Assembly (NCBI GenBank): GCA_002104945.1
Contig: MCFH01000152.1
Span: 1 to 23,444, forward strand
Direction of reading: 5' to 3'
Length of the DNA: 23,444 nt
Origin: Piromyces finnis finn
Lineage: Eukaryota; Fungi; Neocallimastigomycota
A program made the position numbers and the translations under genes. The notes below the pieces were generated by a model. It made no database searches and was not told the DNA's origin. It saw nothing but the letters and a program-made list of their open reading frames with translations. This document shows, in pieces, positions 1-23,444 of this stretch (positions are counted from its first letter, which is position 1; each line of letters begins with the position of its first letter).

Positions 1-1496
1 TTTTAATAAAGATGATTCTTTAATTAATTCTATTCTATGTTCCTTAAAAAATGATGATTTATATAATAAAGTTTGTGTATTTCTTAATGATAAAATTCTT
101 CGTCCCCTCCGATTAGGAATATTAATAAAGTTAAAATTGATAAAGAAGGATTTTTACTTTATGATAATTTAATTTATGTTCCTTCTTCACTAAGAACTAG
201 GGTCTTAGAATTACATCATGATTCTATTTCTGCTGGTCACTTTGGTGTTAATAAAACTATTGAATTAATTAGTAGAAATTTTTGGTGGCCAAAGTTTAGT
301 TATGATGTTAAAAAGTTTATAAAGTCTTGTGAAACTTGTTGTAAAGCTAAAGTTCCAAGACATAAACCATATGGTTTGCTTTCTCCTCTTTCCACACCTA
401 ATAGAGCTTGGTCGGAATTGTCAATGGATTTTATTGTCGAGCTTCCTAAATCCAAAGACATGACTACCATTATGGTTATAGTTGATAGGTTAACAAAAAT
501 GGCTCATTTTATTCCTTTAAGATGTTTGCCTACTGCTTCTATAGCAGCTGATGTTTTTGTTAACAATATCTTTAAATTACATGGTTTTCCTGATTCCATC
601 ATTTCTGATCGAGGTACTCAATTTACCTCAGACTTTTGGAATCGTTTATGTAATTTGTTAAATATTAAACTTGCTTTTTCTACTGCAAACCATCCTGAAA
701 CTGATGGTCAAACGGAGAGGGTAAACGGGATATTGGAACAATATCTCCGTTGTTTTATTAACGAAAAACAGAATAATTGGGTTGACTTGTTACCTTTTGC
801 TGAATTTGCTTATAACAATACTTTACAGCAATCAATCAACCAATCTCCGTTTTTCGCTAATTATGGGTTCAATCCAAAATTTAACCCTGAAATCCCTTCA
901 GCGAATAGACCAAATAGAGCTGAACAAAGAATTTTGGATATTAATGAAAACATTAAATTTTTAAAAGTAAAATCTTGATCAAGCAAAAGAAACCTACAAA
1001 AAGTATGCTGATCAAAAGAGAATGGAATCCCCAGTTTCGAAGTTGGTAAAAAAGTTTGGTTATTAAAAGGTATTAATCCTTCAAATAAAAATATCAAAAG
1101 AAAACTTGCTGATCAAATGCTTGGACCTTTTGAAATAATCAAGAAGGTAAGCCCTTTAGCATTTGAATTAAAATACCAAACAATTTACGTTGCCACCCTG
1201 TTTTTCATGTTTCGTTATTAGAACCTTATAACGAAAATGAATTTGTAAATAGATCAGTAATGAATAAAAGAAAAAATGTTAAGTTAACTACTGATACTAT
1301 TGATAGGATTCCTGATAAGATTATTCAAGAAAGAAATTATCATGGAAAGAAATCTTTCTTGATGACATGGAAAAATCTTGACGAAAATACTTGGATCCCG
1401 GAAGATCAAATTACAGATGTACAATTGATCCAAGAATTTTATAGAAAAATAAAAAGTCTAGAAAAGAAAGTCAAGATCAAGTCATACAAGGAATAA
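1..1496 (+). pseudogene. pol: pol 3' part: integrase (HHCC, DDE core, GPF/Y) plus chromodomain, broken by single-base indels
   Basis: ORF 376-978 is the IN core and ORF 1260-1496 is the chromodomain (KIIQERNYHGKKSFLMTWKNLDENTWIPEDQI). Frameshift at aaagtaaaatctt versus aaagtaaatctt in the other arm. Confidence 0.9.
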
Positions 1497-1575
1497 CAAT
1501 GGTATGATCAAACATAGATATCAACCATTTGTAATTGATATTCCTTCAAAGAAAAATCTCGCAGGAGCTCGACTT

Positions 1576-1586
1576 AAAGGGCGAGA
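1576..1586 (+). other. Polypurine tract of copy A'
   Basis: AAAGGGCGAGA followed by T and then TGTAAAGATATAAAG (1588), which is identical to the outer end of the 5' LTR at 8117 (minus strand). Confidence 0.8.
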
Positions 1587-1587
1587 T

Positions 1588-1972
1588 TGTAAAGATATAA
1601 AGTATATCTTTAAATTATTTTAATATAAAATTATTAATATAATTTGATATTTTATGAAATTTTATAAATTTATTGTATAAATTTATGAATAAAATAAATT
1701 TAATTTAAAATAAATTAATAAATTTGATAATATTATTAATGAAATAAATTAAATTTAATAAATATAAAGTTAATAATGAATATTTAAATATTTAAATTAA
1801 TATTAATTATAATTATAATTATTTAATATATTTAAATTATATTTATTTAATTATTCCATAAAATTTATACAATAAATTTTATAAACAATTTTTTCATTAA
1901 AATATCAAAATTATTATTCAATAATTATTAATTAATTATTAAATAATTTAAAGATATACTTTATATCTTTCA
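1588..1972. repeat. Two head-on truncated 3' LTRs (+ from 1588, - from 1972) meeting near 1780
   Basis: 1839-1972 matches 7985-8117 almost exactly. From 1588 the sequence matches the reverse complement of the LTR start, accumulating deletions toward the centre. Each LTR remnant is about 190 bp of the 722-bp LTR. Confidence 0.8.
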
Positions 1973-1973
1973 A

Positions 1974-1984
1974 TCTCGCCCTTT
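1974..1984 (-). other. Polypurine tract of element A
   Basis: The reverse complement reads AAAGGGCGAGA, immediately before the 3' LTR start at 1972. Confidence 0.8.
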
Positions 1985-2003
1985 AAGTCGAGCTCCTGCG
2001 AGA

Positions 2004-5000
2004 TTATTTCTTTGAAGGAATATCAATTACAAATGGTTGATATCTATGTTTGATCATACCATTGTTATTCCTTGTATAGACTTGATCTTGACTTTCTTTT
2101 CTAGACTTTTTATTTTTTCTATAAAATTCTTGGATCAATTGTACATCTGTAATTTGATCTTCCGGGATCCAAGTATTTTTCGTCAAGATTTTTCCATGTC
2201 ATCAAGAAAGATTTCTTTCCATGATAATTTCTTTCTTGAATAATCTTATCAGGAATCCTATCAATAGTATCAGTAGTTAACTTAACATTTTTCTTTTATT
2301 CATTACTGATCTATTTACAAATTCATTTTCGTTATAAGGTTCCAATAACGAAACATGAAAAACAGGGTGGCAACGTAAATTGTTTGGTAGTTTTAATTCA
2401 AATGCTAAAGGGCTTACCTTCTTGATTATTTCAAAAGGTCCAAGCATTTGATCAGCAAGTTCTCTTTTGATATTTTTATTTGAAGGATTAATACCTTTTA
2501 ATAACCAAACTTTTTTACCAACTTCGAAATCTGGGGATTCCATTCTCTTTTGATCAGCATACTTTTTGTAGGTTTCTTTTGCTTGATCAAGATTTACTTT
2601 TAAAAATTTAATGTTTTCATTAATATCCAAAATTCTTTGTTCAGCTCTATTTGGTCTATTCGCTGAAGGGATTTCAGGGTTAAATTTTGGATTGAACCCA
2701 TAATTAGCGAAAAACGGAGATTGGTTGATTGATTGCTGTAAAGTATTGTTATAAGCAAATTCAGCAAAAGGTAACAAGTCAACCCAATTATTCTGTTTTT
2801 CGTTAATAAAACAACGGAGATATTGTTCCAATATCCCGTTTACCCTCTCCGTTTGACCATCAGTTTCAGGATGGTTTGCCAGTAGAAAAAGCAAGTTTAA
2901 TATTTAACAAATTACATAAACGATTCCAAAAGTCTGAGGTAAATTGAGTACCTCGATCAGAAATGATGGAATCAGGAAAACCATGTAATTTAAAGATATT
3001 GTTAACAAAAACATCAGCTGCTATAGAAGCAGTAGGCAAACATCTTAAAGGAATAAAATGAGCCATTTTTGTTAACCTATCAACTATAACCATAATGGTA
3101 GTCATGTCTTTGGATTTAGGAAGCTCGACAATAAAATCCATTGACAATTCCGACCAAGCTCTATTAGGTGTGGAAAGAGGAGAAAGCAAACCATATGGTT
3201 TATGTCTTGGAACTTTAGCTTTACAACAAGTTTCGCAAGACTTTATAAACTTTTTAACATCATAACTAAACTTTGGCCACCAAAAATTTCTACTAATTAA
3301 TTCAATAGTTTTATTAACACCAAAGTGACCAGCAGAAATAGAATCATGATGTAATTCTAAGACCCTAGTTCTTAGTGAAGAAGGAACATAAATTAAATTA
3401 TCATAAAGTAAAAATCCTTCTTTATCAATTTTAACTTTATTAATATTCCTAATCGGAGGGGACGAAGAATTTTTATCATTAAGAAATACACAAACTTTAT
3501 TATATAAATCATCATTTTTTAAGGAACATAGAATAGAATTAATTAAAGAATCATCTTTATTAAAAGAATTAATTACATTACATGAAATAAAATTACAACT
3601 AAAATTACTACATTCAATATTTTCATTAATCCTATCATTATTATAAATATTACAGATATGATCACTACGTCTGGATAACAAATCAGGTTTACCAGACTTT
3701 TTTCCAGCTCTATAAATTAACTTAAAATCAAATCTTGATAAAAATTCATACCATCTTATCTGTCGTTGTGAGAGCATCTCAGGCTTTCTTGGAAAGGTTA
3801 AATTCTTATGATCAGTATAATGATGAACTGATGCTTTGCACCTTCCAGATAATGCCTCCATTCTTCAAGAGCCACTTTGATAGCGAGCAACTCTTTATCA
3901 TAAATTTGATAGTTCCTTTGAGACTTGGTTAAGCTAGATGAAATAAAAGCAATAGGGTGCAATTGCCCTTCAAATTCTTGTGAAAGAATTGCACCGACAG
4001 CAAAGTTACTAGCGTCAGTCTCAACAATAAAAGGTTTGTTGCTATCAGGGTTCATTAAGATAGGAGCTGAAGTAAAAGCCTTTTTAAGTGTAACAAATGC
4101 ATTTTGACACTCAGAAACCCAATTAAAAGGAACATTTTTCCTAGTAAGTTTGTGTAGAGGACTAGCAATTTTCGCAAAGTCTTTAATAAAAATTCTATAA
4201 TAATTACATAATCCAATAAAGGATTGAACTTCTTTAACGTTTGTAGGAACAGGCCAGTCGAGGATAGCTTTAACTTTATCTCTATCCATTTTCAGACCAT
4301 CTTTGGATAATACATAACCAAGGAAAGTGGTTTCTGAAACATCAAACTCACACTTCTCTAACTTAACATATAAATTATTTTCTAATAATTTTTTCAATAC
4401 TTTTTTAACATGTTCATGATGTTCTTCTAGGCTATTTGAATATATTAGAATATCATCAATATATGATATAGCAAAATCATCTAAATAATCACTAAGGACA
4501 TCATTTATGAAATGTTGAAACGTAGCTGGTGCATTCTTTAAACCAAAAGGCATGACAAGATATTCAAAATGCCCATATCTTGTTCTAAAGGCAGTTTTGT
4601 ATTCATCACCCTCTTTGATTCTAACTAAATTATAAGCAGACTTTAAGTCCAACTTAGTAAAGTATTTTGCACCTTTCACTCTATCCAATAAGTCACCAAT
4701 TAACGGAAGAGGATATGAATTTCTAATTGTCATGTCATTAAGTTTCCTATAATCAACGCAAAGTCTTAATGACCCATCTTTCTTTTTGACAAATAAAACT
4801 GGTGCTCCGGCAGGAGATGAAGATTTCCTAATGAAAACCTTTTTCTAAATTTTCATTGATATAATTTTTTAATTCATCTCTCTCTGCCTCAGTTAAAGGA
4901 TAAAGAGGACCATAAAACAAGTTAGCATTATCCTTTAATCGGATTTCACAATCGTATTCACGATGTGGAGGTAAAATATTACAATTCTTTTCATTAAAAA

Positions 5001-5893
5001 CCTCTTTAAATAATAAATATTGTTTTGGAATTTCAATAGATTTTTTATCTTTATTCAATTATCACTTTCACTTTTACATTTATTAATAATATTACAAAAT
5101 AAATCATAACAGTTACTAACTGAATTTAATACACGAGAATTATTATTATTACACACGTTTTTTGAAAATGAGTACTGTTTTGGTCCAGTGACCGAATTAT
5201 TATCTTTATTTAAATTTTCATCAATACAATTAATGCTATTACATATACATTTAAAATTACAATTATTATCATTATTTAAACTATTACTAAATTTAATTTT
5301 ATTAAAACTATCTAGGTTACTAATGGTTTTGACGGAGGTTCTACGGCCTCTAATACTTAATGTTTCTTCATCATCACTGGAGTCGCTATAAGAGTATTCA
5401 TAATGATTGTATGAACCAAGTTCACTATAAGAGGATTGATCATCTTCATCATCTGAATAACTTCTTTTCCTTTTCTTGATGATATTTTTTCTTTCTTGGT
5501 TTCCTTTGTGCTACTCTTGTTCTTTCTTCTTCCCACATTACAATGTCTGGCACAGTATGTAGAGTTAAATGCAATTTTGGAAGAATCGTGGTAGTAAACA
5601 GGGCAATGTTTATCAATCCAAGGTACACCAAGAATTATATCAACTTCAGGAATTCTAAGTGCATATAATTGAATGACTTCGTAATGATTTCTCAAACGAA
5701 GGATGCACTTTCGGATTCCTTTTTCACGGTAGATGTACCTTGCCCTAAACCAGAAACCTTGAAAGATTCAGCAATATTTGAAAGTTTAATATTATTGATT
5801 CGGGCGAACTCGGGGTGGATGAAATTAAGATCGGAACCAGAATCAATAAGTACCTTAGCTTTGACTTCATCAATATCATTGGTTTTGATATAA
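2004..5893 (-). pseudogene. pol: pol of element A (aspartic protease, RT, RNase H, integrase, chromodomain), split by several single-base indels
   Basis: VLIDSGSDLNFI (DSG 5836-5844) and DIILGVPWI; RT KLDLKSAYN, MPFGLKNAPATFQ, YIDD (4452-4463); RH ETDAS, YDKELLAI, YTDHKNL; IN in ORFs 2866-3861 and 2277-2894; chromodomain ending in ORF 2004-2186. Confidence 0.93.
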
Positions 5894-6860
5894 AATCAAT
5901 AATATTTTTCTTTTCACCTTTATGAATTTCGAATATGTTTGAAGTTCCCTTGGAATTAAGATTATCCTTTTTAATTTTCTTGATTGAAGGGCTAGCTTCG
6001 TCTTCTGAATAGCATCTCTTGATAATTTTTACATTTTTTGGTTTCTTTTTGTTTGGACAATTGAATTGAAAGTGTCCAGACTTTCCACAAGTAAAGCAAA
6101 CTCCATTCTTCTTAGCCTCAGTGCGATTTATTTTATTTTCGTCATAATTACTTCTATGAGGAGGGAAGTAATTAACCTTTCTTTGACCTAAACTGATCCT
6201 ATATAAATCCACATCCATAGGATCATTTTGGTTATAATTTCTTCGGTCTTGATGCGTCATGTAATATTCACTGATATCATTTCTCTTAGTAAGATTTTCA
6301 ATACTAAGGACATCAGAATAAAGACGCTCTAATTGAGAGGGATTTGGATTCACTACAGCTAAATGTTCACGCATTTTCGGATGTAATCCCTTTGTGAACA
6401 TGTATATTTTAGCTGCTTCATTAAAATTCGAATTTTGGCTAACGCGTTGGAATTCGTTAATGTATTCGAACACCTTGCCAAATTTTCTTTGTTTAATGTT
6501 GCAAAGTCTTCCATTTGCAACAATCGTATCATTATTCGGATCCCCGAAATTGGTACGAAGAGCAGCAATAAACCGATCATAGTTTCTTAGAACGGCGTCG
6601 TTATTTTGTCTTAAACGAGCGGCCCATTCTAAAGGTCTATTGACAAAGTAAGATATTAAGAATCGAACTCTTGCCTCATCATTAACAAATCTATCAGGGT
6701 TGGCTTCAATGGCTAGTTCAACCCTGGTCAAGAACCCATCTAGTTCTTGTCTTCTTCCTGAAAAGGTTGGAGGATCATTAACTATCCTCAAAGACGCCCC
6801 TTGACGGTCCATATTTTCGTTTAAGTGGAGGTTAGATAAGAGTTGGTTGATTTCCTCCAA
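5894..6860 (-). CDS. gag: gag of element A (retrotransposon capsid domain plus CCHC zinc knuckle)
   Basis: PPTFSG..LDGFL, EWAARL..YDRFIAALRTNFG, FEYINEFQ, DPMDVD and CFTCGKSGHFQFNC (6057-6098). The start reads ATTGGAG, probably ATGGAG with an extra T. One extra T at ~5897 (TTTT to TTTTT) would fuse gag in frame to the protease. Confidence 0.9.
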
Positions 6861-8279: not shown

Positions 8280-9903
8280 TCATAATTTATAAATTTAATT
8301 ATTTATCAACAAACTGACACACGTTCAAGTATACCTTAATTCTAAATAAGCTTAGAAAGTGGTATATTTGGTATGTATTTGAATGACTTATTTTTACTTG
8401 CTCATTCTACAAGTTTATATAATTATTAAATATAATTTAAAGTTTTAAAAACACATCTTGTTTTATAATATTAATTTATTTATTTAAAATAAATGTATAA
8501 TACATCTCGCTATGTATTATAAAAAAAATATATTAATTTATTATAATTTTAAAATATTCTAATTTTCTTGGCTAATTAGTAACAATCTTTAAAAATAATA
8601 TTTTCTATTTCTATTTATAATAAATAATTACATTTAAGTTTGTTTATAAACAAAAGTTGTTTATATTTTACATTTTTAAAATTTAATTAAACATTATATT
8701 TTATATTATTTTGATTATTTACTATTATTTTAATTTATATTAAGTTTATATAATTTTAAAATCAGCTATTCTATTAATCATTATTTATAAATTTCATTCT
8801 TTATCAAAACTAATGTAAAAGGTTTTTTATATTATTAGTTAATAAGTTATAATTAGTTAATTAAGTTAGTTATTACCTCTCTATACGAGTTAATAACTAA
8901 ATAAAGTTTTATAAAAAATAATAAAAGAAAGAAAATAAATATTATAACACTAAAATAAATATAAACACTGATATAAATATTTTATGAAATAATTCTTACT
9001 TAAATAATTATTTTTAATTATATCTTTTATTTATTTATTATAATATCATACATTAATTATTATTATAGTTATTAATTTACTTTAATACTAACGCTAAAGT
9101 ATTTAACGTTAGTTTAAACTATACTATTTAACTATATTAGTTTATTTTTTTTACCACTTGATTGGGTAAAGCAAATAAACTTCCTATTTAATTAATAACC
9201 ATTAATATATGGTTATGCACATATCTGGCCAATAAATGGTGACCAGAATATATGGTTTCAATTGAAATATTTGTGGGCAAACTTATGGCCACTGTAAAAT
9301 AAACTATACTACAGTTCAGGTTTGTATACACTAAATTAAACTAACACAAACTATGTTTTATTTTTAATAATACTTTTATTTATTTTAAACTATATTAACA
9401 ACCGTTGATTACTTTACCGTGAAGGTTATTTTACCAGAGCCCTTACTAGGTAATCAATTTATTTTTATTTAAAACTAAAATTATTAATCTAAACTATAAA
9501 CTAATGTTAATTTATACTAAATTAACCTATACGATTTTCCAACTATCGTTTCAATAGTTGAAAATTTTTCTTTATTTATACTTTTTAAATAAATTGAATA
9601 AATTCTAATATACATGTTTTAATATTATAATTTTACATGTTTACATTTATACATTTATTAAAAGAAATTATTTGTATTAAACTATTTAAATTCAATTTAT
9701 TTACTAAAGAATTTTCTAAACTTAAAATAAAGTTTTGATTTATTTACTATATGGTTGATTATATTTCAAACATATATTCAATTTATTTATTTCTAATTTG
9801 AGGCTTAGTTTATAAAAAAATTTTTTATTATCTAAAATATTATTGGTTAAAAATTATTTAATTTAAAATTTTATTTTATCATCAAAAACTTATCTTATCA
9901 TAA

Positions 9904-10009
9904 AATAAATTTTACATAATTTATGTTAATGTATTGTGATATAAATTTTTGTAATTAAAGAATAAAATTTACATAAATTTATGTTAACGTATTGGATATA
10001 AATTTGTAA
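9904..10009. repeat. Degenerate tandem duplication, period about 57 bp
   Basis: aataaattttacataatttatgttaatgtattgtgatataaattt versus aataaaatttacataaatttatgttaacgtattggatataaattt. Confidence 0.75.
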
Positions 10010-10140
10010 AAATTTACGGTACATTAATTTAATACATTATACATTATTTTAAATATGTATTAATACATTGTTCTATTAATACAATATTTACAGCCACAAA
10101 TATTTCTTACATGGTACAACCTGTTTGTTTTGTTTGTACC

Positions 10141-10413
10141 TTTATATGGATCAATACAACTAGAATGAATAAAACAATTATTATATTATAATGAAATAAC
10201 ACAACAATAAAATGATTTTTATATTTATGTATTATGTATATTCTTTTTATTTATCTTTGATCAATAATGTACTATTTATATGGATCAATACAACTAGAAT
10301 GAATAAAACAATTATTATATTATAATGAAATAACACAACAATAAAAATGATTTTTATATTTTATGTATTATTGTATATATTCTTTTATTTATCTTTGATC
10401 AATAATGTACTAT
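10141..10413. repeat. Tandem duplication, 134/138-bp units
   Basis: tttatatggatcaatacaactagaatg...tttgatcaataatgtacta starts at 10141 and again at 10275. Differences are mostly indels in A/T runs. Confidence 0.95.
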
Positions 10414-11334
10414 TAATGATTTAAACTCTTATAATAGAAATAAATAAGTATAATTCACTAGATTATAATCTGAATATCACTATTAATTCCTACTTAAATC
10501 TAATAAATATATTTATCTATCTAGTATTATCACTTATGCCTATTTTCTTATTATTATTTCTTATTATCTTTATATCGTTTCTTCTCTTTTAATATTTATT
10601 AATTCTCTTTTATTAAATACTCTTTGTTGTAATTAAGGTTTTTAGTCTTTTTTAATTAATTTATTTATAATTTTATTTTAGTTATTGCTATAAGTGTTAT
10701 TAATTAAATCAATAATTGTTAGCTTATAAATTTATATATTAAATTTTTATTAAACCTAAAATACTTAAAGTAGAATATTATTAGTAAAATTAAAGGTTAA
10801 ATAGGAATTCCTATGCTCTTACATTTTCTGAATCAGTCGTACCATACTGTAAGAAACATAGATAATTCTATATAATTTACCTATTTTCTTATTAATTAAT
10901 ATTATTATAATGTTTATTATTATTTATTGTTTAATACATTAATTTAACACATTATTTAATACACTATTAATACATAATTTGATACATTAATTAAATACAT
11001 TAATTAAATACATTGTTTTATTACATTAATTAGTTGTATCATTTTAACCAATCCATGTATAATGTATTAAATTACTATAAAAGAATAATCTTGATTCTCT
11101 TGAGAAATCAGAGTTATATTATATAAATTATTAATAAATAAAGTTAATATTATTTTAAAAATAATGTTTATTAACGTGTGTTTTAATGTTAATATTATAT
11201 TTTGTTTATTAGTATTTTTATAAAACTCGACATTAATGTTTTATTTCTTTCTCAAATTAGTAATATTTAATTATTATTAATTTGTAGAAGAATTATTTAT
11301 AATTTATTAAAGTAACTTCTTACACATACAACTA

Positions 11335-11893
11335 TGTCACAATAAATTAAAAATTTAAAAAATTTGGACACATGAAAAAAATTAAAAATTTTTTTAAAAT
11401 TGAAAATTTGAAAATTTGAAAAATTTCAAATTATAAAATTTCTAATATTCGAAATTATTAAATTTTTTTAATAATTATTAAAATTTATTAAAAAATTTTT
11501 ATTTTTAAATTATTAACTATTACAATAATTATAATTATATTATAAAAATTAAATATTTATAATTAGATAATAATAATTAAAATTAAAAAATGTAATAATT
11601 AAATTGTTCATTATAAAAAGAACAAAATTGACAAAAATTACGAATTTTAGCATTAGTAATTTTAACTTAAAGTTAATAAAATTATAAACTCCTATAAACC
11701 TAAAACTTTAAAAATTTTAATATTTTTAATAACTTAATATATGCTGATATTAAGTTATTGCTAAATAAAAATATTATTTAATTTCTTTATATAAATTATA
11801 GCTTTACGCCTTCAATAGGAAAGCGTATATATTTGTTAATTAATATAACTAGTGTCTTACCACACTTTCTTTAATAAAAAAATCGCTTTGACA
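11335..11893 (+). repeat. Candidate 5' LTR of element B (559 bp, TGTCA...TGACA)
   Basis: Perfect 5-bp terminal inverted repeat, followed by a self-complementary PBS and then the gag ATG at 11972. TATAAAA at 11612-11618 lies about 30 nt before the PBS complement. There is no second LTR in the window to confirm it. Confidence 0.6.
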
Positions 11894-11904
11894 TTACTAA
11901 CGCT
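11894..11904 (+). other. Candidate self-priming PBS of element B (TTACTAACGCT)
   Basis: 10/11 complementary to AGCATTAGTAA at 11649-11659 inside the candidate LTR. Confidence 0.55.
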
Positions 11905-11971
11905 TATATAAAAGTCGCTAAGCACCAATTAGTTAGTAATTATAATAACTAAATATAATAATTAAAGTTTA

Positions 11972-13420
11972 ATGGAAAATCTCCACTTACACCTATAAAG
12001 TGATACAAAAGAATTTTTAACCGCCTACAAACTACCAAGAGAGAACGTTCCCCAGAAATACTCCCGAAGAAAATCAAAGATGCCTATCATTCCGGACAAA
12101 TTAATGCTTCTACGAGTAATCCTACTCAGAAGCCAACTACTAATGAGGATCTCAAGGCCCTCATTGATCTTTAATGCTACCTTACTGGGATATCAATCAG
12201 TTAAAGGTTGATATTCAAGCTACCAGAAGGGAAAACGAAAGCTCAATGATCGTTTGACTTTTGGAAAACTCTACTCAAGTTATTATGGGTAAGATGGCTA
12301 CTTTAGAAGTCAACGATGCTAGGAAAGACAATCAACTCGCTGATATCAAAGCTCATATCAGCAAAGCTACTCAAGAGTTGATGAGTTGTTACTCCCGTAC
12401 TCCTTCTACTACACCCTCACGAACCTGACGGTGACGTCATCATGGAGATGCTTCCCTCCAAACGTCGCTGAAAAAAATGCTTTCTTACTCAGAGAAATTC
12501 AACTACGCAGTTCATCCGTCGATGCGAACACCACTCTTAAGACACATCAATTCTATGGAAACAATGAAGCTATGAAAGTAAACTTCATTGAAGATTGTCT
12601 ACTGGTGATGCTGCAGATTGGTACGTTGTTGAACAAGCAGACTTCCAGGAATTCATCCGAATAGAAAAGTTCTTTACGAAGCTTTGAGTAAGAGATTCCT
12701 TAACCCGAAGGATATCAACATCACCAAAATCGACCTGATGAAGCTCAGACATAGTTGGGGAAAAGCTTCCGAATACTTAGGAAAATTCTCCCAATATGTC
12801 AAATTAATTGGATGTCCGAAGACATTCAATTAACCATCATGCTTTTCCAATTAGACCTACCGTGAACCACGCCTTTAGTAAGTAACTTCTGATAGACAAA
12901 CGTTAGAAAACTGAAGAATCTCTAATCAAATATGATGCTTCCAAGGATACTTATACGATGATACTTTGGAAAGACAAGCTAACTACAAGGACAAAGAGCC
13001 CTTAATAGTAATTATTAGGTATTCATGGCAGTCTTTATTCCAAAAACCCTAACAAGAATAACAATCGAATAACAACCAAAGGAACAACAATAACAGCAAT
13101 CGCCCGTCTAACCAAAAAGGAAAAGGCTCCAGTAACTGGATAGCAATCGTACTAAAAATCCCAATAAAAGTACTAAACCTAATAATGGTACTTCATACTC
13201 CAGCTATCTCTGTGAGTAGAAGAGCAAGATATCTTAGAGCTACCAAATCCTGATCCGGAGAAGTATCCCATCGTGAAGACTAGTGTAAAAACTTCTAAAG
13301 GATCTAGACAGGTTATCAACTTCGTCTCTCTTAGATTCTGGCTCTACTACCAATGTATCCATATGGATTTAGTGAAGAAACAGGAATAAGACCATACCAG
13401 CTGATACTGTTGTAAAGGTC
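11972..13420 (+). pseudogene. gag: Frameshifted gag and protease N-terminus of element B
   Basis: Fragments in shifting frames: coiled-coil-like LENSTQVIMGKMATLEVNDARKDNQLADIKAH, TGDAADWYVVEQ, LYEALSKRFLNPKD..LMKLRHSWGKASEYLGKF, and protease SLLDSGSTTN (LDSG 13331-13342). No CCHC knuckle was seen. Confidence 0.75.
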
Positions 13421-16400
13421 ATGGGAGGTAATGTCCTAATGCATTACATCACAGAAGAGTTCAACATTGTAATGAACTTATCTTCTTTAGGAAGAACTCG
13501 AGAAGAAGTTCGTCAATACAAACTTCGATGCCACGTAGCTGATCAGCTTCCTTCTTCGATTCTCCTAGGTTCTAAGTTCATGAAAACCAACTTCTTCTGT
13601 ATCTTTACACAACCTGACCATTCCTTTACAGTTAAAATTGGTCCTGTTCCTTTCTCCAACCATAATGGATCTGAGATTAAATCTCCTAACTTTAGGAATG
13701 ATTTGAAGAAATCTACACCTCTTCATGAATTACGCGAAGTCCTCCAAAAGAGACAGTTCGTCTTAGACGAACAATGGGACAAAGAACATTTGAACGATCG
13801 AGGAAGAATCGTGATCAAGAAACAATCAAGCAAGAAACCCAATAATAACCATGTCCACAACACAGAAACGATAACCCTATCCAACGAAGAAAAACTGAAA
13901 ATCGAACAAAGGCTTCTTAAACAAAAACAAAACAATCAAAGTTTTATAATCTCAACTGACCATAAAGAAGGACTCGACGAATACATTATCAAGGAAATAC
14001 AAAACCTCCCTCAAGAATTACAAGAATTCAAGCAAGTTTTCGGACCACCACCAAAGGGCAAGATATTTAATAGGAAAAACGAAAATTTAAATTCATACTT
14101 ACCTTATGATAAGGAAAAAGTTAAGAGGCTACCCATGATGCCTCACATCAAATTAGACAAAAACCAAGAAGACGCTCTTGAACAAGAATTTCATGAACTT
14201 GAACAGAACGGAAAAATCGAGAGAACTCGATCCAGTTCGGCTTGCAACGTCTTTAATGCACCTAAGAAAGATGGTACATTCAGAACTGTGTTTAATTACG
14301 TTATGGTTAATAATTGCCTACACCATAACAACTACCCAATACCTAAAATAATCGAACTTGTACACAGAGCTGCCCAGTATAAGTTCCATATTTTACTAGA
14401 TTTAAGAAATGCCTATAACCAAATCTATCTCGAGCCCAAATATCGTTTCCTTACAAGCTTTAGATTTAAAAACCAAACCTATCAATGGAAAGTTCTTCCC
14501 TTTGGACTCTCCACTGCCCCATCCATTTTCCAATCCATTCTCAACCTCTTATTAAAAATATACTTGAATAAAGGTATTGATATCTACCTAGATGATATAC
14601 ATATTTATGCCCAAGATAAGCAAGAATGCCTCAGACTTTGTGCTTACACTTTAAAGAAGTTCAAAGAAAATAATTTCTTTTGTAAACTTGAAAAATGCTT
14701 ATTTTTCCCAGAAGAATTCGAATATTTAGGGTACAAAATTGGATATGAAAAAATACGTCCTATTTCTAATAAAACTTTAGACATTAAAGAATGCAAAACA
14801 CAAAAGGAATATCAGCAACTATATGGCTTTCTTAATTATTTCAAAGACTACGTAAATAACTTTACCGAAAGAACAAAATATATCTCTATGGGACTATCAA
14901 ATAAAACCACTACTTGGACTAAAGAAATGAATGACGAACTAAATTATTTTAAGAAATTAATTCCTAACCTTCCAAATTTAGCACCGTTTAAACCTAACCA
15001 CGATATCTTTATCCTAACCGACGCATCGGAAATCGGAATTGGCGCCGCAATTTTTCAAGCGGGGGCCCCCAATGTACATATTCAAAATTACATTTTAAGT
15101 AACGTATACAAGAATAATATTAATCGTGAAATCATCGAAAACTTATTTGGTCATAAAAATTGGACATTAAACGGACATTCTGAAGTAAATGGACGTGAAA
15201 ATAAGAAAATCGATAAAGCCAAGAATCGTGAAGATATCAATCCACCAATTAAATTGAATGAAGCAATGAATACATTTGAAATAAAAAACAATAGTTTATC
15301 CGAATTAAAAAAGTATTTAAAACCCATAGGCTTTTTCTCCAGAAAATTGAATTCTACAGAAAGAAAATATTCAACATTCGACAGAGAATTATTAGCTCTC
15401 TCGGACACCTTACAACACTACCGGTTACTTCTCCAACAAGGACAAAAAATATACTGTGCGACGGACCATAAGAATTTGGTAATCTACATAAATTCCGGAT
15501 CCAAAGTCGAAACTAATCGTAAGTTAAGATTATTTGAAAATATTTGCAATTACAATATAATACCTTATTATATCGAAGGAAAAGACAACAAGATTGCAGA
15601 TCTACTCTCAAGATTTATTAAAATGGAAAACGAAACCGAAAATACTAGCAACAGAAGAAACCCACAGCAGGTCAACAATATTGAAGAAACAAATTCTTTG
15701 GATTTCTTAGTAAATGCCATTGAACTCAAGGACTTAGAATCTACCAACAAAGAAGAAGATAACGAGGAACCAGACTTAAAAGTCTTTAAGACTACCATAA
15801 GTTCGCTAATGGAAAATAATAAACAAAAGGAACTAAAAAATTATCTTATCAATTGGTACAAGAACCAGGATATGTTATTCAAATCATTGAAGGAACAAAT
15901 AGTAAACCTACTAGAAGAAAACACTTTCTTCGAAAAACAATATAAAAAACAAGTTAATCTCAGATGTCAAGACCTAAAAGATGTATTGGATAAAAGAGAA
16001 CATTTTAGTTCAGAAATAAAAAAGGTGAAAGATGAATTACAACTTCTACAAACTGGCAACACCCAAGGAGAAACTAAAAGAAAATTTGATAGACTTAATC
16101 AAAAAATAAACGATTTAAGGTATGACCTCAATCCAAAGGCTGAAAGAATAGAACTCACTAAGAAAGTAAACCATTCGGAAAAACAGATAACTGCCCAATG
16201 GAAAGAGATAGAAAACCTCAAGAAAATAATAGAAAAAATGGATAAAAGGATAACTGCCCTAATCATTGACAACGAAGAAGACTCAAATCTGGATAAATCA
16301 ACTTCCATTCCAACAGAAACAGTCTTCATAGTCGATGATCAGAATCCTGAACTAGTAGAATCTATCAACGGTATACCTTTGGAATATGAAGATTTATATG

Positions 16401-19336
16401 AAGCCTTCAATGAAGAACGAGCCGATGAACTTCCTGAACATCGTGTATATGATTGTTCTATTGATTTGAAACCTAATGCTTCATTATTTTATGGGCCAAT
16501 TTATCCAACTACTCCTACTGAACGTCAATTTATTAAGGAGTATATTGAAGAAAACTTGAATAAAGGATTCATTAGAAAATCCCGATCTCCTGCTGGACAT
16601 CCAGTTCTACTCCAAGATAAGAAGGATGGTAGTCTCAGATTTTGCGTTGACTATCGCAAGCTCAACGACCAAACTATCAAGAATGCCTATCCGCTACCTT
16701 TAATCCTATCAGTCTTTGAATCAATGAAAGGTGCTAACTATTTCACTAAGTTAGACCTCAAGTCAGCTTATAATTTAATTAGGATTAAAGAAGGTGACGA
16801 ATACAAGACTGCATTTAGGACGGCATTTGGTCACTTTGAGTACTTAGTCATGCCTTTTGGACTAACTAATGCTCCTGCAGTTTTCCAAGCTTTCATTAAT
16901 GATATCTTTAGTGATCAAATTAATAAGTACGTTCAAGTGTAATTGGATGATATCATTATCTACTCCAAGACCCTTGAAGAACATGTTCAACATGTTAGAA
17001 ATGTTCTTCAATTAATCATTGAAAACAACTTAGTTGCGAAACTCAAAAAATGTGAGTTTCACAAAGCTGAAATCGAATTTTTGGGTCACGTAATCAGTAA
17101 GGAGGGAATCAAAACTGATCCTCACAAAATTGAAGCAGTTAAGAACTGGCCTATCCCCACTACTGTGAAAGAAGTTCAGTCTTTCTTAGGGTTATGCAAT
17201 TACTACCGTCGCTTTATCTCTAACTTTTCTAAAATTGCAAAACCATTATACAACTTAACTAAGAAAGGCGTCACTTTCATATGGACAGACGAGTGTAATA
17301 GAGCATTTAATCAACTTAAAGAATTTCTTACTTCAGCTCCAGTTTTACTTTGTCCTGATCACGATAAACCATTCATAGTTGAATGTGACGCAAGTGACTT
17401 TGCTATCGGGGGAGTACTTTCACAAAAAGGTGATGATGGAGACCTGCATCCAGTTTATTACTTTTCTAAAACCCTTCATGATGCAGAACTTAATTACTCT
17501 ATCACCGAAAAGGAACTCTTAGCAATTCGTCAAGCTTTTATCGAATGGCGTCACTTACTTCAAGGTGCAAAATATCCTATTACCGTTTATTCAGACCATC
17601 GAAACTTGCTTTTTGCTACCAAACCGCAACTTCTATCCCAAAGACAAGCTCGTTGGCAAGAATACTTTGCTACTTTTGATTTCAAGATTATCTATCGACC
17701 AGAAAAGAAAAATGGTAAAGCTGATGCTCTCTCTCGTAGATCCGACCATATGCTCACAGTTGGTAAGGATATAAGTGAATCATCCTTACTTAAACCAACT
17801 CAATTAGAAGGATTCAACGAAGATGAATGCTACTTCTCTATGGAAACTAGCTTCATTGACGACATTAAGCAGTGCTACCTTCAAGATGAAACCGCTTGTC
17901 AGATTCTTAAGGATCTTGAAGTTCCAAATAGTGATCATCCTTGGATTCTTCAAGATGGCCTTTTAATAAGAACCAAACATCCGGAGCAAGTATATGTTCC
18001 AAGTCAACTAAGACTCTTAGTTATTAAGCTCAACCATGATGCACCCACTGCCGGTCACTTGGGAGTCGATAAGACTTATGACATTCTTAAACGTAATTTC
18101 TATTGGGTTAATATGCGTCAAGATGTCGAGTCTTATATTCGAAGCTGTAGTGTATGCAAGGCAATGAAAACCGATCACCATGCTCCTTATGGTAATATGA
18201 TCCGTGTCCCTCTTCCGGAACTTCCATGGCAACATCTACAAATGGACTTTATCACGGACTTACCATCAAGACCTTGTAACTCTACCTTACCATTCGACTC
18301 TACCAATCCGAACCACTATCAAGGTACCATAATGGTTACTACTTGCTACTTAACTAAGATGATACACTTAGTTGGGTTCAAACATTTATCCACTGCTAAG
18401 GAAACTGCTACTGCTTTTCTTAACCATATTTTCAAACTGCACGGATTCCCCTTATCTATTGTTACAGACCGTGGTACTCAGTTCGAAAGTCGTCTTTGGT
18501 TCCACTTGATGGAATTCTTTAATATCGATCACCACTCTGCTACTACTGGCCATCACCGCACTGTTGGACAAGTAGAACGTAACAACGACTACGTCGAAAC
18601 TTATCTTCGTTGCTACTTAGCTCAATTTGATGATCTCAGTTGGATGGATCATTTGTACTTAGCTGAATTTTGCTACAACAATTCCATCCATGCTTCCACC
18701 AAGCAACCACCATTTCTCTCCGTCTATAATTATCAAGTTCACGCAAACCCACAAATTGCAGACCTTGTTTCTTCTTTAGGACTTCATCCCCTCATCGATA
18801 GCTTCTCCCATAACTTAGCTGACCTTAAGCATACTCTCGAAGTCAGTCGTACCCGTTATCTCGATGAAAAGGATAAGCACCTTTATCACAACTTTAAGCG
18901 CTTCAAGGTCCACGATCTTGTTTGGCTTCGCAAACCCGCTAATTATCATCCTCCATTAGCGTTCAAGCTCCAAACCCGCAAGTATGGTCCATACAAGGTC
19001 ACTGGTGTCGATGAATCTAAGCTCAACTACCGCCTTGATTTATCTACCTCACCTTTCCCTCGTGTCTACCCCGTATTCCACATCAGTGAACTCGAACCAT
19101 ATCATCCCACTCCTCACCATCTATTGCTCAACCATCCCAACTCCAATGAAATCACCAAGATCCTTAGTTCTCGTAAATCGGGTCATTTTTACGAGTACTT
19201 AGTCACTTTTACTGACTTATCTCAACGTTGGATCAATGCTGACACCATTGATAAGGATGACTACTACAGCACCCTTTTAGCTGATTACCAACGTCGCGCT
19301 TACCAACAATTCACCAATTCCGTCCCAGATTCTTAA
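13421..19336 (+). pseudogene. pol: Chimeric pol: PR C-half, RT1, RH1, coiled coil, RT2, RH2, integrase and chromodomain-like tail, in one frame with a single internal TAA (16940-16942)
   Basis: ORFs 13421-16942 and 16943-19336 are contiguous and in frame. PR ILLG; RT1 YLDD (14585-14596); RH1 TDAS/DRELL/ATDH; RT2 V*LDD; RH2 ECDAS/TEKELL/SDH; IN HDAPTAGH..CSVC, MDFI, TDRGTQF, GQVERNN, GPY; tail ITKILSSRK..YEYLVTF. Confidence 0.92.
13730..16276 (+). mobile_element. Inserted fragment of a second retroelement family: RT - RNase H - coiled coil (2547 bp, 849 codons)
   Basis: Switch from C/T-rich to A-rich sequence near 13727-13733. Similarity to the copy at 22033-23444 stops exactly at IIDNE (16276). 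The ends are flanked by GAA/GAA. The left junction is uncertain by a few bases. Confidence 0.85.
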
Positions 19337-19675
19337 TCTGGACCCCACTTATTAGTATCCCACCTACTAGTGTCTACCACCCTTACTCCTTCACTACCCA
19401 CCTATCGCCACTACCCCACCTACTACCCACAACTCCGCTACCCACTAGTCGCCACCACTACAACTACCAACCACTATTCCGCTACCCAACCACCCTCTTT
19501 CGCCTTTGCCCTCAACCCTCAAATTCCGCAACCTTTTCCGCATCCCAAAATCCGTATCCCCTCGAGTCATATCATTTCCCTAACCTTCACGTGTAGTCTC
19601 CATTTCTGAAGAATCCACGTGATACCCTCACAACTTTTCTTTGAACACTTTTACACCTCACTTTTTCAACACTTA
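19337..19675 (+). other. C-rich, G-poor low-complexity 3' region of element B (ccactac/cctac motifs)
   Basis: Strong strand asymmetry is visible directly, with repeated ctacc/ccact words. Confidence 0.8.
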
Positions 19676-19683
19676 GAAAAATT

Positions 19684-20886
19684 TTGAGAATTTTCAAAAA
19701 ATGGAAATTCTCAATTTTTGAAAAAAAATCTAAGGTAGCACGTAACGTATTACGAAGAGCAATGAGAAATAGAATGGTGCATAATAAAGCAAGACAATTG
19801 GCTCAAAATTTAGGACGTAGAGCAAGAGATAGGATTGTACGAAGAAATCGTAGGATTGGCAATAGACAATTCGAATCAGTTAAAGGAAATGCTGCTGGTA
19901 CAACCCATACTACAACACGTATGATAGTACGTAGAACACCACGCGAACAACGATTTTTACGCAAATTGTTTAAAACAAACCCTACTAAAAACAAATATAT
20001 AAACAGATTTGGTTTTTCTTGGATGGGTGCTGGTGCAGCCTCAAAAACTATTTGGTATAGTGTTTGTCATTTAAAGTTCAATAATTTATGTAATTATTTA
20101 CAAGGTCGTAAAATCTTACCGACACAGAGTATAGAAGGAGTTTCTGCTACAGTAACCAATGATAAAGCCGTGGGAAATTCCCCATCAGCTGGTATTTACG
20201 TTGGTAAATGTACATTCCATTACGAATTGTATAACCCAACTAATTATTTAATGACCGTATACATTTACGATTTAATTTGTAAATGTGATACACCACATCA
20301 AATAGCATATTCTGATGCTAATAATGATGGTAATAGTGCCCCTGAAGCTTGTATGCAAAAGGGTTCAAAATCCATGACCGATGGAGGTTCTGCCCCAACA
20401 TGGCAAGTTGCAGACCCTACACTCGAAATGGGTACATATTGGAATACTGTTGGTATGAAACCAACGGACTATCATTTATTTAATACGATTTGGAAAGTCA
20501 AAGGAATGAAAAAAATCATTTTACCACCTGGATCATCACACCATCACGTGGTTATATACAACCCAAAAAAGAAGATAACCAATGCTAGTTTATTATACCC
20601 TAGAGAAACTAGACATACTAATAATAAAATGGGTATTGGTGGTATTACACAAGCAACTTTATTTGGTTTTGAAGGTCAAGTTGCAACTGAAGACAATCAA
20701 CGTAGTGATGGTACAATTGTAGGTACATTACCTGGTAAATTATTAGTTAAATGTATTAAAAAGGTAAATATATGGGATCTTCCATGTAACTATCAATCAG
20801 TAACATCTGAAGATGATTTAGTAGCAACATGGACTAAACCAACTATATTCTCTGATTTAGTAGAAGTCAATGCAAGCTCTACATAA
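19684..20886 (+). CDS. cap: CRESS-DNA (circular ssDNA) virus-like capsid protein, uninterrupted; first in-frame ATG at 19762
   Basis: Arg-rich N-arm (RNVLRRAMRNR..GRRARDRIVRRNRR) followed by a beta-rich body. Segments ELYNPTNYLMTVYIYDLICK and GMKPTDYHLFNTIWKVKGMKKIILPPGSSHHH resemble single jelly-roll capsids of environmental CRESS viruses. It converges on a Rep remnant. Confidence 0.85.
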   Translation: MRIFKKWKFSIFEKKSKVARNVLRRAMRNRMVHNKARQLAQNLGRRARDRIVRRNRRIGNRQFESVKGNAAGTTHTTTRMIVRRTPREQRFLRKLFKTNPTKNKYINRFGFSWMGAGAASKTIWYSVCHLKFNNLCNYLQGRKILPTQSIEGVSATVTNDKAVGNSPSAGIYVGKCTFHYELYNPTNYLMTVYIYDLICKCDTPHQIAYSDANNDGNSAPEACMQKGSKSMTDGGSAPTWQVADPTLEMGTYWNTVGMKPTDYHLFNTIWKVKGMKKIILPPGSSHHHVVIYNPKKKITNASLLYPRETRHTNNKMGIGGITQATLFGFEGQVATEDNQRSDGTIVGTLPGKLLVKCIKKVNIWDLPCNYQSVTSEDDLVATWTKPTIFSDLVEVNASST

Positions 20887-20887
20887 G

Positions 20888-21086
20888 AACACGTGACATA
20901 CAACTAAGTTAACGTGTTTGATCCCTGTGAGCCGCAGGCTCTAGACCCTGGCCGTTGACTATCACATGTTTATATCTCATGGTGATCATGTGATGAGTCA
21001 CACCCTCCCACTTATCCATAGCCAAGTGGTTCTGAGAGGATTGTTTCCTACTCTGGACGGACGGCTCTGGGGGAGTAGGAGGAACA
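20888..21086. other. GC-richer intergenic region tiled by five stem-loops
   Basis: aacacgt/acgtgtt (20888-20918); gagcc/ggctc (20929-20941); tgact-atcacatg/catgtgat-g-agtca (20956-21000); cctc-ccactt/aagtgg..gagg (21004-21039); tgtt-tcctactc/gagtagga..aaca (21042-21086). Confidence 0.75.
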
Positions 21087-21156
21087 GATTTTTTTATTAT
21101 TTTTATTTAACACAAAATGTATACAACACAAATATAATGTAATGTAATGTAAATAT

Positions 21157-21169
21157 AATAAACTTTATT
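21157..21169. terminator. Back-to-back polyadenylation signals AATAAA-c-TTTATT for convergent cap and rep transcripts
   Basis: AATAAA on + at 21157-21162 and on - at 21169-21164, the latter overlapping the rep stop codon. Confidence 0.6.
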
Positions 21170-21303
21170 TAATATAATTTATTTTGTAAAACAATACAAG
21201 TACAATTTTTTTTTAAAAAGTTTAAGTGTTCAATATTTAAATTCTTATATAAATCTTCATTGGATAACCAAATCATTGGTTTTCCCCAATGAACCGTTCT
21301 TTT
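21169..21303 (-). pseudogene. rep: C-terminal remnant of a geminivirus/genomovirus-like Rep (end of the SF3 helicase domain)
   Basis: KRTVHWGKPMIWLSNED...LNFLKKNCTCIVLQNKLY* matches the WGKP-x-IWL-x-N...W/FL-x-x-NC C-terminus of gemini/genomo-type Reps (WGKP at 21288-21277). No Walker A/B or HUH motifs are recognisable upstream. Confidence 0.8.
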
Positions 21304-21765
21304 AAAATTAAATTGCCTGTTCGTTTTAGTAAAAACTAACGGGGGCCTTTTCTTCAATGGTAACTAGATAATATGTAGCTATGGCTATATACTATTTCGG
21401 GTATTGGCCTACTTATCTTAGGAAATCTAAAATACTTAAACCAATGTATATGTAGTATTGACGTTAAAGAGCCTACTTTAAGGAATTTTCACGTAAGTAA
21501 AACTCGTTTGTGATTTATGCGTTTTATATAATAATTTTATTTAATATGTTTTATTATAAGTTTATTTATAAGATCAAAGTTATTTAAAAGTTTGTTGTTT
21601 TATTAATTCTTTATCCTCTGTTGCTATATTGTCGAGGAAGACTATCTTTTTCTAGTGATTAATAATAACTAACAAATACTTTTAAAAGTTATAAAGTTTT
21701 ATAAATAAATGAATTTTTTCGAATTAATACGTTTGAGTTTAAAATTTTCGTTACAAATTTTATAT

Positions 21766-21869
21766 TACGAATTTAAATTACGAATTTTAACTACGAATTA
21801 AAACTACGAATTTTAACTACGAATTAAAACTACGAATTTTAATCACGAATTTTAACCACGAATTTTAAA
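21766..21869. repeat. Eight tandem copies of a 13-bp unit, consensus [t/c]acgaattttaac
   Basis: Units start at 21766, 21779, 21792, 21805, 21818, 21831, 21844 and 21857. Confidence 0.95.
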
Positions 21870-22032
21870 TTAGAAAAAACTAAAGTTTTAAAATAATACA
21901 TTTAGATGATATTTATACATGATTATTAAATTTAGCTATAATATTATTAATAAACTATTACTAATAGAATTTTTAAAGTTATATTAAATATAAATAATTT
22001 TAACTAATTAGATTCATTTTTTGTGTTTAAAG

Positions 22033-23444
22033 TTAGTCAAATGTTTCTTGGTTCTTTTTCATTGGTTCATTTGTTAAATCGATTTCTATTTGAAAGTTCG
22101 AAAGTTTTCTTTTCTTAAGTTCATTACTAATTACGGCTTCGGAAGCGGGGAAGATTTCCTTTAATTCGTTATCAATTATCAAAGCATTGATTCTTTTACT
22201 AATACTTTCGATTTTATTTCTAAGTTCTTCTGTTTCCTTCCATTGGGCAGTTAATTGTTTTTCCGTTTTATTAACCTTTCTAGTAAGTTCGATGCGTTCG
22301 GCCTTTGGGTTTAGATCATATCTAAGGTCGTTGATTTTTTGATTTAATTTGTTGAATTTTCTTTTAACTTCTACTTGAGTGTTTCCTGTTTGAAGAAGTT
22401 GAATTTCGTCTTTTACCTTTTTAATTTCTTGATTAAACTGTTCCTTTCTGTCCAAGACTTCTTTTAAGTCTTCGCATCTTAAATTAATCTGCTTTTTATA
22501 TTGTTTTTCATAATAAGTGTTTTCTTCTAATAGGTTAATAATTTGTTCTTTCAAGCTTTTGAATAGTTTATCCTGATTTCGATACCATTTGTATAGGTAA
22601 TCCTTTAATTCTTCTTGTTTATTGCTTTCGATTAATGAATTGATTGTAACTTTAAAGACTTTGAAGTCGGTGTCTTCTTTCTTTTCATTATTGTTTGATG
22701 ATTCCTTATCTTTTAATTCAATTGTGTTGATTATAAATCTAGTGAGTTCATTTCCTCTATGTTGTTTATCTGTTGTGGATTAGCTATAGTATTATTGTTT
22801 ACTTCATTACTTTGTTCCATTTTGATAAATCTTGATAATAGGTCCGCTATTTTGTTATCTTTTCCTTCTATGTAGCAAGGTATAACATTAAAATTGCAAA
22901 TATTCTCGAATAGTCGTAGCTTTCTATTTGTTTCGACTTTGGAACCAGAGTTGATATAGATTACTAGGTTCTTGTGGTCCGTGGCGCAATAGATTTTTTG
23001 TCCCTGTTGAAGTAATAATCTGTAGTGATGAAGAGTATCTGAAAGGGCTAGCAGTTCACGATCAAAAGTCGAGTATTTTCTCTCAGTTGAATTTAGTTTT
23101 CTTGAAAAGAAACCTATTGGCTTTAAATATTTTTTAAGTTCTGTTAAACTATTATTCTTTATTTCAAATGTATTCATAGCCTCATTTAATTTCATTGGAG
23201 GATCGATATCTTCACGATTTTTGGCTTTATCGGATTTATTATTTTTGCGTCCATAATGTCCGTTATACGTCCACTTCTTATGACCAAATAGATTTTCGAT
23301 TGTTTACGATTGACATTATTCTTGTATACGTTACTTAAAATGTAATTTTGAACATGTACATGGGGGCCCTCCGCTTGGAAAATTGCGGCACCAATTCCGA
23401 TTTCCGAGGCGTCGGTTAGAAAAAAAATGTCATGGTTAGGTTTG
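22033..23444 (-). pseudogene. Second copy of the RT-RNase H-coiled-coil family (RNase H plus coiled coil to the natural stop), frameshifted, running off the window end
   Basis: The reverse complement encodes KPNHDIF..TDASEIGIGAAIFQ, PIGFFSRKLNSTERKYSTFDRELLAL, ATDHKNL, IADLLSR, then LKEQIINLLEENT...INALIIDNELKEIF...ETFD*. It is homologous to ~14990-16276. Confidence 0.92.

Follow-up and report, generated by a model that had tools for sequence, protein, structure and literature searches.

A single Ty3/gypsy element copy of the gut fungus Piromyces finnis carries the reverse transcriptase–RNase H module of a second retroelement family in frame

The window analyzed here is the whole of a 23,444-nucleotide (nt) contig, C60, of the anaerobic gut fungus Piromyces finnis, from an AT-rich assembly of 56.46 Mb in 232 contigs. 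Within it, one copy of a Ty3/gypsy retrotransposon family, which we call B, carries a piece of the polyprotein of a different retroelement family, A. The piece is stop-free, lies in sense and in frame, and spans 13730–16276 (2547 bp or 849 codons), giving the domain order gag, protease (PR), a first reverse transcriptase (RT1), a first RNase H (RH1) and a helical tail, all three from A, and then RT2, RH2 and integrase (IN) from B. The chimera is real DNA and is present at one locus. It is a single dead-end copy rather than a new class of dual-RT element, having one locus, one stop codon, and no descendants, and its most likely origin is one-off illegitimate recombination.

Results

The insert and its junctions

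Comparison with the other B copies fixes the limits of the insert to the base: in every one of them the match ends exactly at 13729 and resumes at 16277, and every A copy matches solely the inner side of each junction. The extent of the insert, its length of 849 codons, and its sense orientation had been correctly read from the sequence alone, and the proposed foreign origin as an internal fragment without termini or target-site duplication is borne out by its derivation from a different family. The flanks (11890–13729 and 16277–19400) have counterparts in at least 14 other copies, at 99% identity for the downstream flank and 96% for the upstream one, or about 99% for the latter after allowing for one-base deletions in the window (see below). 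The guanine-cytosine (GC) content of the insert is 31–32%, compared with 36–45% for B.

The original prediction also held that excising the insert would restore an ordinary pol. Every ordinary B copy, however, has 21 further bases between the equivalents of 13729 and 16277, seven codons that read VMFITEL in short-read contigs, and the event was thus a replacement and not a clean insertion. Both junctions fall in the PR–RT linker of B, 130 residues past its protease aspartate. Most A copies have GAAGAA before the 5′ junction, so that at most 3 nt (GAA) are shared with B. At the 3′ junction 0 nt are shared: GAAGAC is preceded by CTC in ordinary B, and AACGAA is followed by TTA in A. The flanking GAA of the original description thus comes down to microhomology of up to 3 nt at the 5′ junction and none at the 3′ one.

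The chimeric reading frame

Most of the window is present a second time in the assembly, on the 911-kb contig C57, where 848657–870428 is the same sequence as window positions 1822–23444. The differences between the two consist of 152 one-base deletions in the window, concentrated in 9500–13500, and only 5 mismatches; window positions 1–3565 are moreover an inverted repeat of themselves at 96.7% identity. By these sequence comparisons, C60 appears as an unpolished, fold-back, redundant long-read contig of the C57 locus and not as a second copy. As C60 carries one-base deletion errors, frameshifts seen in the window are not to be trusted. The stops upstream of 13421 are such errors, and the ATG at 13421, from which the frame had originally been read, is consequently an artifact: in the C57 twin, the same frame is open through gag for 1673 codons from the gag start, followed by one stop and another 797 codons. 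The total of 1673 + 1 + 797 = 2471 codons exceeds the 1629 of ordinary B by 842, that is, 849 − 7.

A single frame with two RTs and two RNase H domains had been predicted, and the domains are indeed there: Pfam finds RVT_1 twice and RT_RNaseH twice, then an Integrase_H2C2 zinc finger, rve, and a Tf2-type SH3 domain; in the translation of the C57 twin, the upstream part matches Ty3_capsid (weakly) and Asp_protease_2. The frame itself is broken by a TAA at 16940–16942, inside RT2, directly before the LDD motif and upstream of RH2 and IN. This stop is present in the C57 twin too and missing from at least eight ordinary B copies with 1629-amino acid frames. In the insert, the YLDD motif of RT1 and the acidic residues of RH1 are intact. 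The last ∼170 residues of the insert are predicted to form helices of up to 77 residues (predicted local distance difference test score ∼70–77), and this modeled helical tail fits the coiled coil that had been proposed to follow RH1. A chromodomain had been assigned to the C terminus of the B integrase; Pfam does not confirm it, giving no PF00385 match there and only a subthreshold Tudor-knot match (E value 0.08).

The two polymerases are distant relatives, with RT1 and RT2 only ∼31–32% identical. When placed separately in an RT tree, RT1 joins a long branch with full support that holds every family-A copy and a single metagenomic relative, and RT2 clusters with further gypsy elements of P. 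finnis, amid Tf2-like sequences from fungi and vertebrates. The coordinates of the chimera and its parts are collected in Table 1.

Table 1. Features of the chimeric B copy (window coordinates)
Feature	Position	Strand	Remarks
5′ long terminal repeat (LTR) of B	11335..11893	+	TGTCAC...TTGACA; same ∼0.6-kb repeat at both ends of other B copies; window version has 1-bp deletion errors
B leader, gag, protease	11894..13729	+	96% to at least 15 B copies, 97% to C57 twin; protease tail and PR–RT linker end at 13729
5′ junction	13727..13732	+	B ...CATGAA / TTACGC... A; GAA is possible microhomology
Family-A fragment, 849 codons	13730..16276	+	PR–RT linker of A, RT1, RH1, helical tail; A copies 72–81% over full length
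RT1 YLDD	14585–14596	+	Within family-A fragment
RH1	about 14918–15526	+	Within family-A fragment; Pfam RT_RNaseH
Helical tail	about 15770–16273	+	Within family-A fragment; predicted long helices
3′ junction	16274..16279	+	A ...AACGAA / GAAGAC... B; no microhomology; preceding 21 bp of B absent
Resumed B pol	16277..19336	+	RT2, RH2, integrase (H2C2 zinc finger, rve), SH3-like domain, C-terminal tail; 99% to at least 14 B copies
TAA stop in RT2	16940..16942	+	Directly before LDD; in C57 twin; not in 8 copies with 1629-amino acid frames
B 3′ internal region	19337..19734	+	Ends in left arm of ∼66-nt palindrome, where the copy is interrupted; other B copies match to about 19734

Reality and copy number

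A 121-bp probe across each junction matched C60 and C57 only, and the other B and A copies matched one half of it. No further copies sharing the junctions were found beyond these two contigs, which by the rule laid down in the original prediction reduces the chimera to a one-off recombinant. Neither the junction nor a free donor appeared in two exact-pattern scans of public metagenome contigs. In short-read contigs from one DNA run on the same organism, depth is ∼190–200 for the insert and ∼3200 for B, and the insert is thus single copy. A 1338-nt short-read contig, free of differences, begins in B 30 nt from the junction and continues into the insert; independent short reads thus contain k-mers that span the 5′ junction. 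The 3′ junction is supported by the two long-read contigs, C57 and C60. In runs guessed to be RNA, coverage of the A insert is nil except for one 210-nt piece at depth 2.9.

The donor family

The copies of family A have ∼6 kb in common, with an open reading frame (ORF) of ∼1930 amino acids that comprises a gag-like part, protease, RT, RNase H, and a helical tail. The copy on contig C13 (L030) is a single 1928-amino acid frame with a long N-terminal part without Pfam matches and the protease motif LLDSGS; Pfam matches of this polyprotein are to RVT_1 and RNase H only, and no integrase was found in it. A self-comparison of five loci gave no LTRs, and no flanking direct repeats were found around three full-length copies. 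With no LTRs found in family A, the argument that a nested LTR insertion should have brought LTRs along, on which the original prediction drew, does not apply. The A RT is of gypsy type, yet forms a separate long branch in the RT tree.

The same self-comparison gave one exception, a 95-bp direct repeat of 97% identity (window 21301–21395 and C57:875031–875125) that encloses an antisense full-length A copy plus ∼0.2–0.4 kb to either side; the repeat may be a short terminal one belonging to this lineage of A, or else a large target duplication. The hexapeptide ALIIDN occurs twice in the A protein (L030 ORF), at residue ∼940 on the N-terminal edge of the protease and at residue ∼1920 at the end point of the insert, and may be a protease processing motif.

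The insert matches about ten other A loci (among them L030, L031, and L032, on C13, C176, and C181). All A copies are singletons, 71–82% identical to one another, and the insert is about equally distant from them. Synonymous differences among the copies are saturated (proportion of synonymous differences, pS, 0.71–0.86) and nonsynonymous ones low (pN 0.07–0.13), and the ratio of nonsynonymous to synonymous divergence (dN/dS) of the insert relative to other A copies is far below 1. That ratio and the fully open frame of the insert indicate that the donor was a working A lineage; by its pattern of substitutions, the insert looks like one more singleton lineage of a family under strong protein-level selection. 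In a sliding-window comparison, no part of the insert stood out by high identity, which rejects a mosaic of the known A copies. Protein searches for the donor returned only a 61%-identical metagenomic relative, which is a 5′-truncated A-like copy in another AT-rich fungal contig, and generic gypsy matches at ∼30%.

Within family A, the insert starts in the PR–RT linker, 117 residues past the A protease aspartate, and ends ∼45 codons before the A stop. It hence does not include the conserved 3′ untranslated end of A, with the motif CTAGTTTTTTCTAG common to seven of seven A copies with the 3′ end in hand, and it also lacks the 5′ 3.2 kb. The A copies are often 5′-truncated. Two candidates for related events among the A copies were rejected. 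The A copy on C13 is cut no more than 6 bp from the position that corresponds to the 3′ junction, as at a breakpoint hotspot, but the cut is made by an unrelated 365-bp TG...CA solo LTR with its own 5-bp duplication, ATAGA, and we judge its position next to the equivalent of the insert end to be a coincidence. On C204, what looked like a second A between the gag and RT of a gypsy element is an A copy that keeps its normal 3′ end and merely adjoins a gypsy fragment.

The host family

Family B is of Ty3/gypsy type, with TG...CA LTRs of ∼0.6 kb and gag-PR-RT-RH-IN order, and eight ordinary copies have an intact 1629-amino acid frame. The ordinary B joint is seen in short-read contigs at ∼16 times the depth of the insert, and also in contigs of the runs guessed to be RNA. 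B is young and active-looking, and it is probably transcribed. The chimeric copy differs from the high-depth B consensus at 7 positions in 1154 bp (13200–13729 and 16277–16900), or ∼0.6%. Six of these seven differences are C>T or G>A in the chimeric copy, which hints at a deamination-type mutation bias acting on repeats; a lone stop is unremarkable among them.

The LTRs of B differ by ∼8% between copies whose internal parts are ∼99% identical, owing either to exchange of LTR subfamilies or to many long-read indel errors in AT-rich LTRs. Another Ty3/gypsy family occupies window positions 2277–6860 on the minus strand, its RT ∼68% identical to that of B at the DNA level. Its many copies elsewhere in the genome have open frames of 1626–1635 amino acids, from which the genome holds several young gypsy families.

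The 3′ end and fate of the chimeric copy

The 3′ internal end of the chimeric B copy is split within a ∼66-nt palindrome at about 19734, and ∼9 kb of other elements lie between the two parts. This interruption holds an unrelated 1.6-kb repeat (19735–21304) and, in antisense, a full-length copy of A with 76% identity to the insert; the part of this A copy within the window is 21867–23444 (minus strand), 5.6 kb downstream of the insert in the same B copy. The right palindrome arm, a polypurine tract, and an LTR follow at C57:875856–876611. The suggestion that the chimera may have been viable finds no support in its one locus, its single-copy depth, the RT2 stop, and a 3′ end split by ∼9 kb. Transposition after the chimera arose has left no sign, with both junctions at one locus and at single-copy depth.

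The 1.6-kb repeat in the 3′ palindrome carries a 400-amino acid ORF (19684–20886) with no match in Pfam or PDB sequence searches. Three other copies of the repeat are 94–98% identical (C176:391359, C24:270769, and C13:793749).

Discussion

The analysis establishes the chimera itself, the junctions to the base, the presence of one copy, the source of each part, and the RT2 stop; from these we infer an RNA-level route. Our preference, a modest one, is for two nonhomologous template switches during minus-strand synthesis in a B particle with a co-packaged A RNA, by which 2547 bp of A replaced 21 bp of B. The reverse transcriptase would have copied B RNA from its 3′ end to 16277, jumped to A RNA ∼45 codons before the A stop, copied A back to just beyond the A protease, and then returned to the B RNA 21 nt upstream of its departure point, possibly guided by GAA. 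Switching of this kind is known from LTR-mediated retroposition, in which the RT moves to a co-packaged RNA and back, and a partial foreign transcript replaces part of the ORF of the element (PMC5131818); template-switch chimeras have also been described elsewhere (PMC1950507). We favor it here because the insert is sense, partial, and internal, a short ORF stretch was replaced, the captured piece has no duplication around it, and the junctions share little similarity, all as in LTR-mediated retroposition (PMC5131818).

The in-frame outcome we take to be chance. Chimeric complementary DNA (cDNA) would be integrated by the proteins of the parent particle, and no function of its own would be needed. 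Sense orientation with both junctions in frame is a ∼1-in-18 outcome under a template switch and under capture at a DNA break alike, and neither route selects for function. The breakpoints of A and B both lie in PR–RT linkers, so that a complete RT–RH module landed between domains, and this placement could be a coincidence picked up by a scan that seeks out oddities.

Several observations weigh against the template-switch account. The microhomology is weak, at 3 nt (5′) and 0 nt (3′), compared with a published median microsimilarity of 6 bp at switch points (PMC5131818). No close donor is found in the assembly, where the best A copy, on C168, reaches 81%, and a loose end at 13730 that continues into A-type sequence, the mark of a free donor copy, is missing from the short-read contigs. 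No contig bridges the 3′ junction among the short-read contigs listed, where gaps prove nothing and the depth would allow for one among 23 further records. Aligned with the 5′ LTR, the candidate 3′ LTR shows 7 mismatches and 32 gap columns (93.7% identity counting gaps), and the flanks of the pair, AACTA and ATGTA, differ, so a clean LTR pair with a target-site duplication was not seen. Finally, a DNA-level event would give the same junctions.

Such a DNA-level event is the strongest alternative, one we regard as rather unlikely and nevertheless take seriously. A break in an integrated B copy or in unintegrated B cDNA would have been repaired by end joining with the loss of 21 bp, and A cDNA or DNA ligated in as filler. 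The 21-bp deletion accompanying the insertion, the microhomology of 0–3 nt, and a fragment cut short at both ends without target-site duplication are all as expected of it. There are documented cases of retrotransposon cDNA being captured at breaks (PMC4516963, PMC11372161, and PMC1976456), and for A, without an integrase, break repair may be the general way into DNA. The out-and-back template switch of the original prediction thus fits the features and the published LTR-mediated retroposition, and break capture explains the junctions equally well. Against capture stands the ∼1-in-18 chance of sense orientation and two in-frame junctions in a random event, with which it is still compatible, and no empty allele is known, the species being represented by a single genome.

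We consider it quite improbable that the insert is an ordinary nested A insertion, made by the machinery of A itself and trimmed later. Truncation at the 5′ end is common among A copies, and a further A copy does lie in the same B copy, 5.6 kb downstream. The insert, however, is without the conserved 3′ end shared by the other copies for which that end is in hand as well as without the 5′ 3.2 kb, its site has lost 21 bp instead of gaining a target duplication, and two later deletions that both kept the frame are an unnecessary assumption.

Still less probable, in our view, is a working dual-RT lineage, with the chimera itself or an ancestor of it competent for transposition and the frame kept by selection. 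A frame open over 2471 codons bar one stop, breakpoints in linkers with a whole RT–RH module between domains, and the intact RT1 and RH1 residues could be read in this way. Nonetheless, both junctions occur at one locus only with the insert at single-copy depth, the stop in RT2 lies upstream of RH2 and IN, the junction is absent from the metagenome contigs scanned, and the copy is so young (∼0.6% from the B consensus) that an open frame needs no selection.

That long-read assembly made the chimera is hardly credible: C60 is a poor fold-back contig and the 3′ junction is unbridged in the short-read contigs listed, but two separately built contigs carry both junctions, a difference-free short-read contig crosses the 5′ junction at single-copy depth, and the join is in frame at both ends.

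Whichever of the template switch and the break capture applies, the chimera is a new example of a known accident, the capture of foreign sequence by an LTR retrotransposon; its unusual point is that the captured piece is the polymerase of another element, in frame. The closest parallels are LTR-mediated retroposition and retrovirus-like transduction (Drosophila and vertebrate retrocopies in LTR elements, maize Bs1, and yeast Ty1-mRNA chimeras; PMC5131818). As there, a partial foreign transcript in sense replaces a stretch of the element's own ORF, with no target-site duplication around the captured piece and little junction similarity. The P. finnis chimera differs in having captured the pol of another retroelement and not a host mRNA, which put two RT–RNase H modules into one frame. 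It also lost only 21 bp of the host element, its microhomology of 3 and 0 nt is shorter than usual, and no further rounds of transposition are seen. In the template-switch complex LTR elements of the Triticeae (PMC1950507) and in inter-element recombinants, elements are joined at their LTRs or through them, or homologous segments are exchanged between members of one family; the chimera instead adds, and does not swap, an internal piece of a family only ∼31% identical in RT.

Filler capture of retrotransposon cDNA at double-strand breaks (PMC4516963 and PMC11372161) resembles the chimera in the truncated fragment, the small target deletion, the microhomology of 0–3 nt, and the absence of LTRs and duplication. 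Orientation and frame would be random in such events, the target of the chimera is itself a retrotransposon ORF, and no break or empty allele is documented. Compared with ordinary nested transposable element insertions, the insert is without termini of its own and the frame is kept. The host element B is itself like the Ty3/gypsy chromoviruses in its LTRs, its gag-PR-RT-RH-IN order, and an RT that falls with fungal and vertebrate Tf2-like elements, although its chromodomain is unconfirmed by Pfam.

The chimera changes little, being one broken copy that arose through an accident of a known type. It is nevertheless a clean, base-resolved case of one retroelement taking the polymerase module of another. 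It shows that, in anaerobic gut fungi, the RNAs or cDNAs of retroelement families unrelated to each other come into contact, and it exemplifies a way in which pol domains might in principle pass from one family to another. Of greater interest is a by-product, the donor family A, which encodes gag, protease, RT, and RNase H, in which neither an integrase nor LTRs were found, and which exists only as deeply diverged singletons with conserved proteins. One speculative reading, to which we give little credence, is that A is an integrase-less, LTR-less, virus-like retroelement without genomic copy-and-paste that would enter DNA only accidentally, via co-packaging and recombination with chromovirus cDNA or via break repair. 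It would fit the data because the A copies are all singletons at 71–82% identity, their synonymous sites are saturated while the proteins are conserved, and no donor was found in the assembly or the short-read contigs; if true, the chimera would be a direct snapshot of the entry route of A. More generally, the chimera may bear on how A-type elements enter and persist in the genome.

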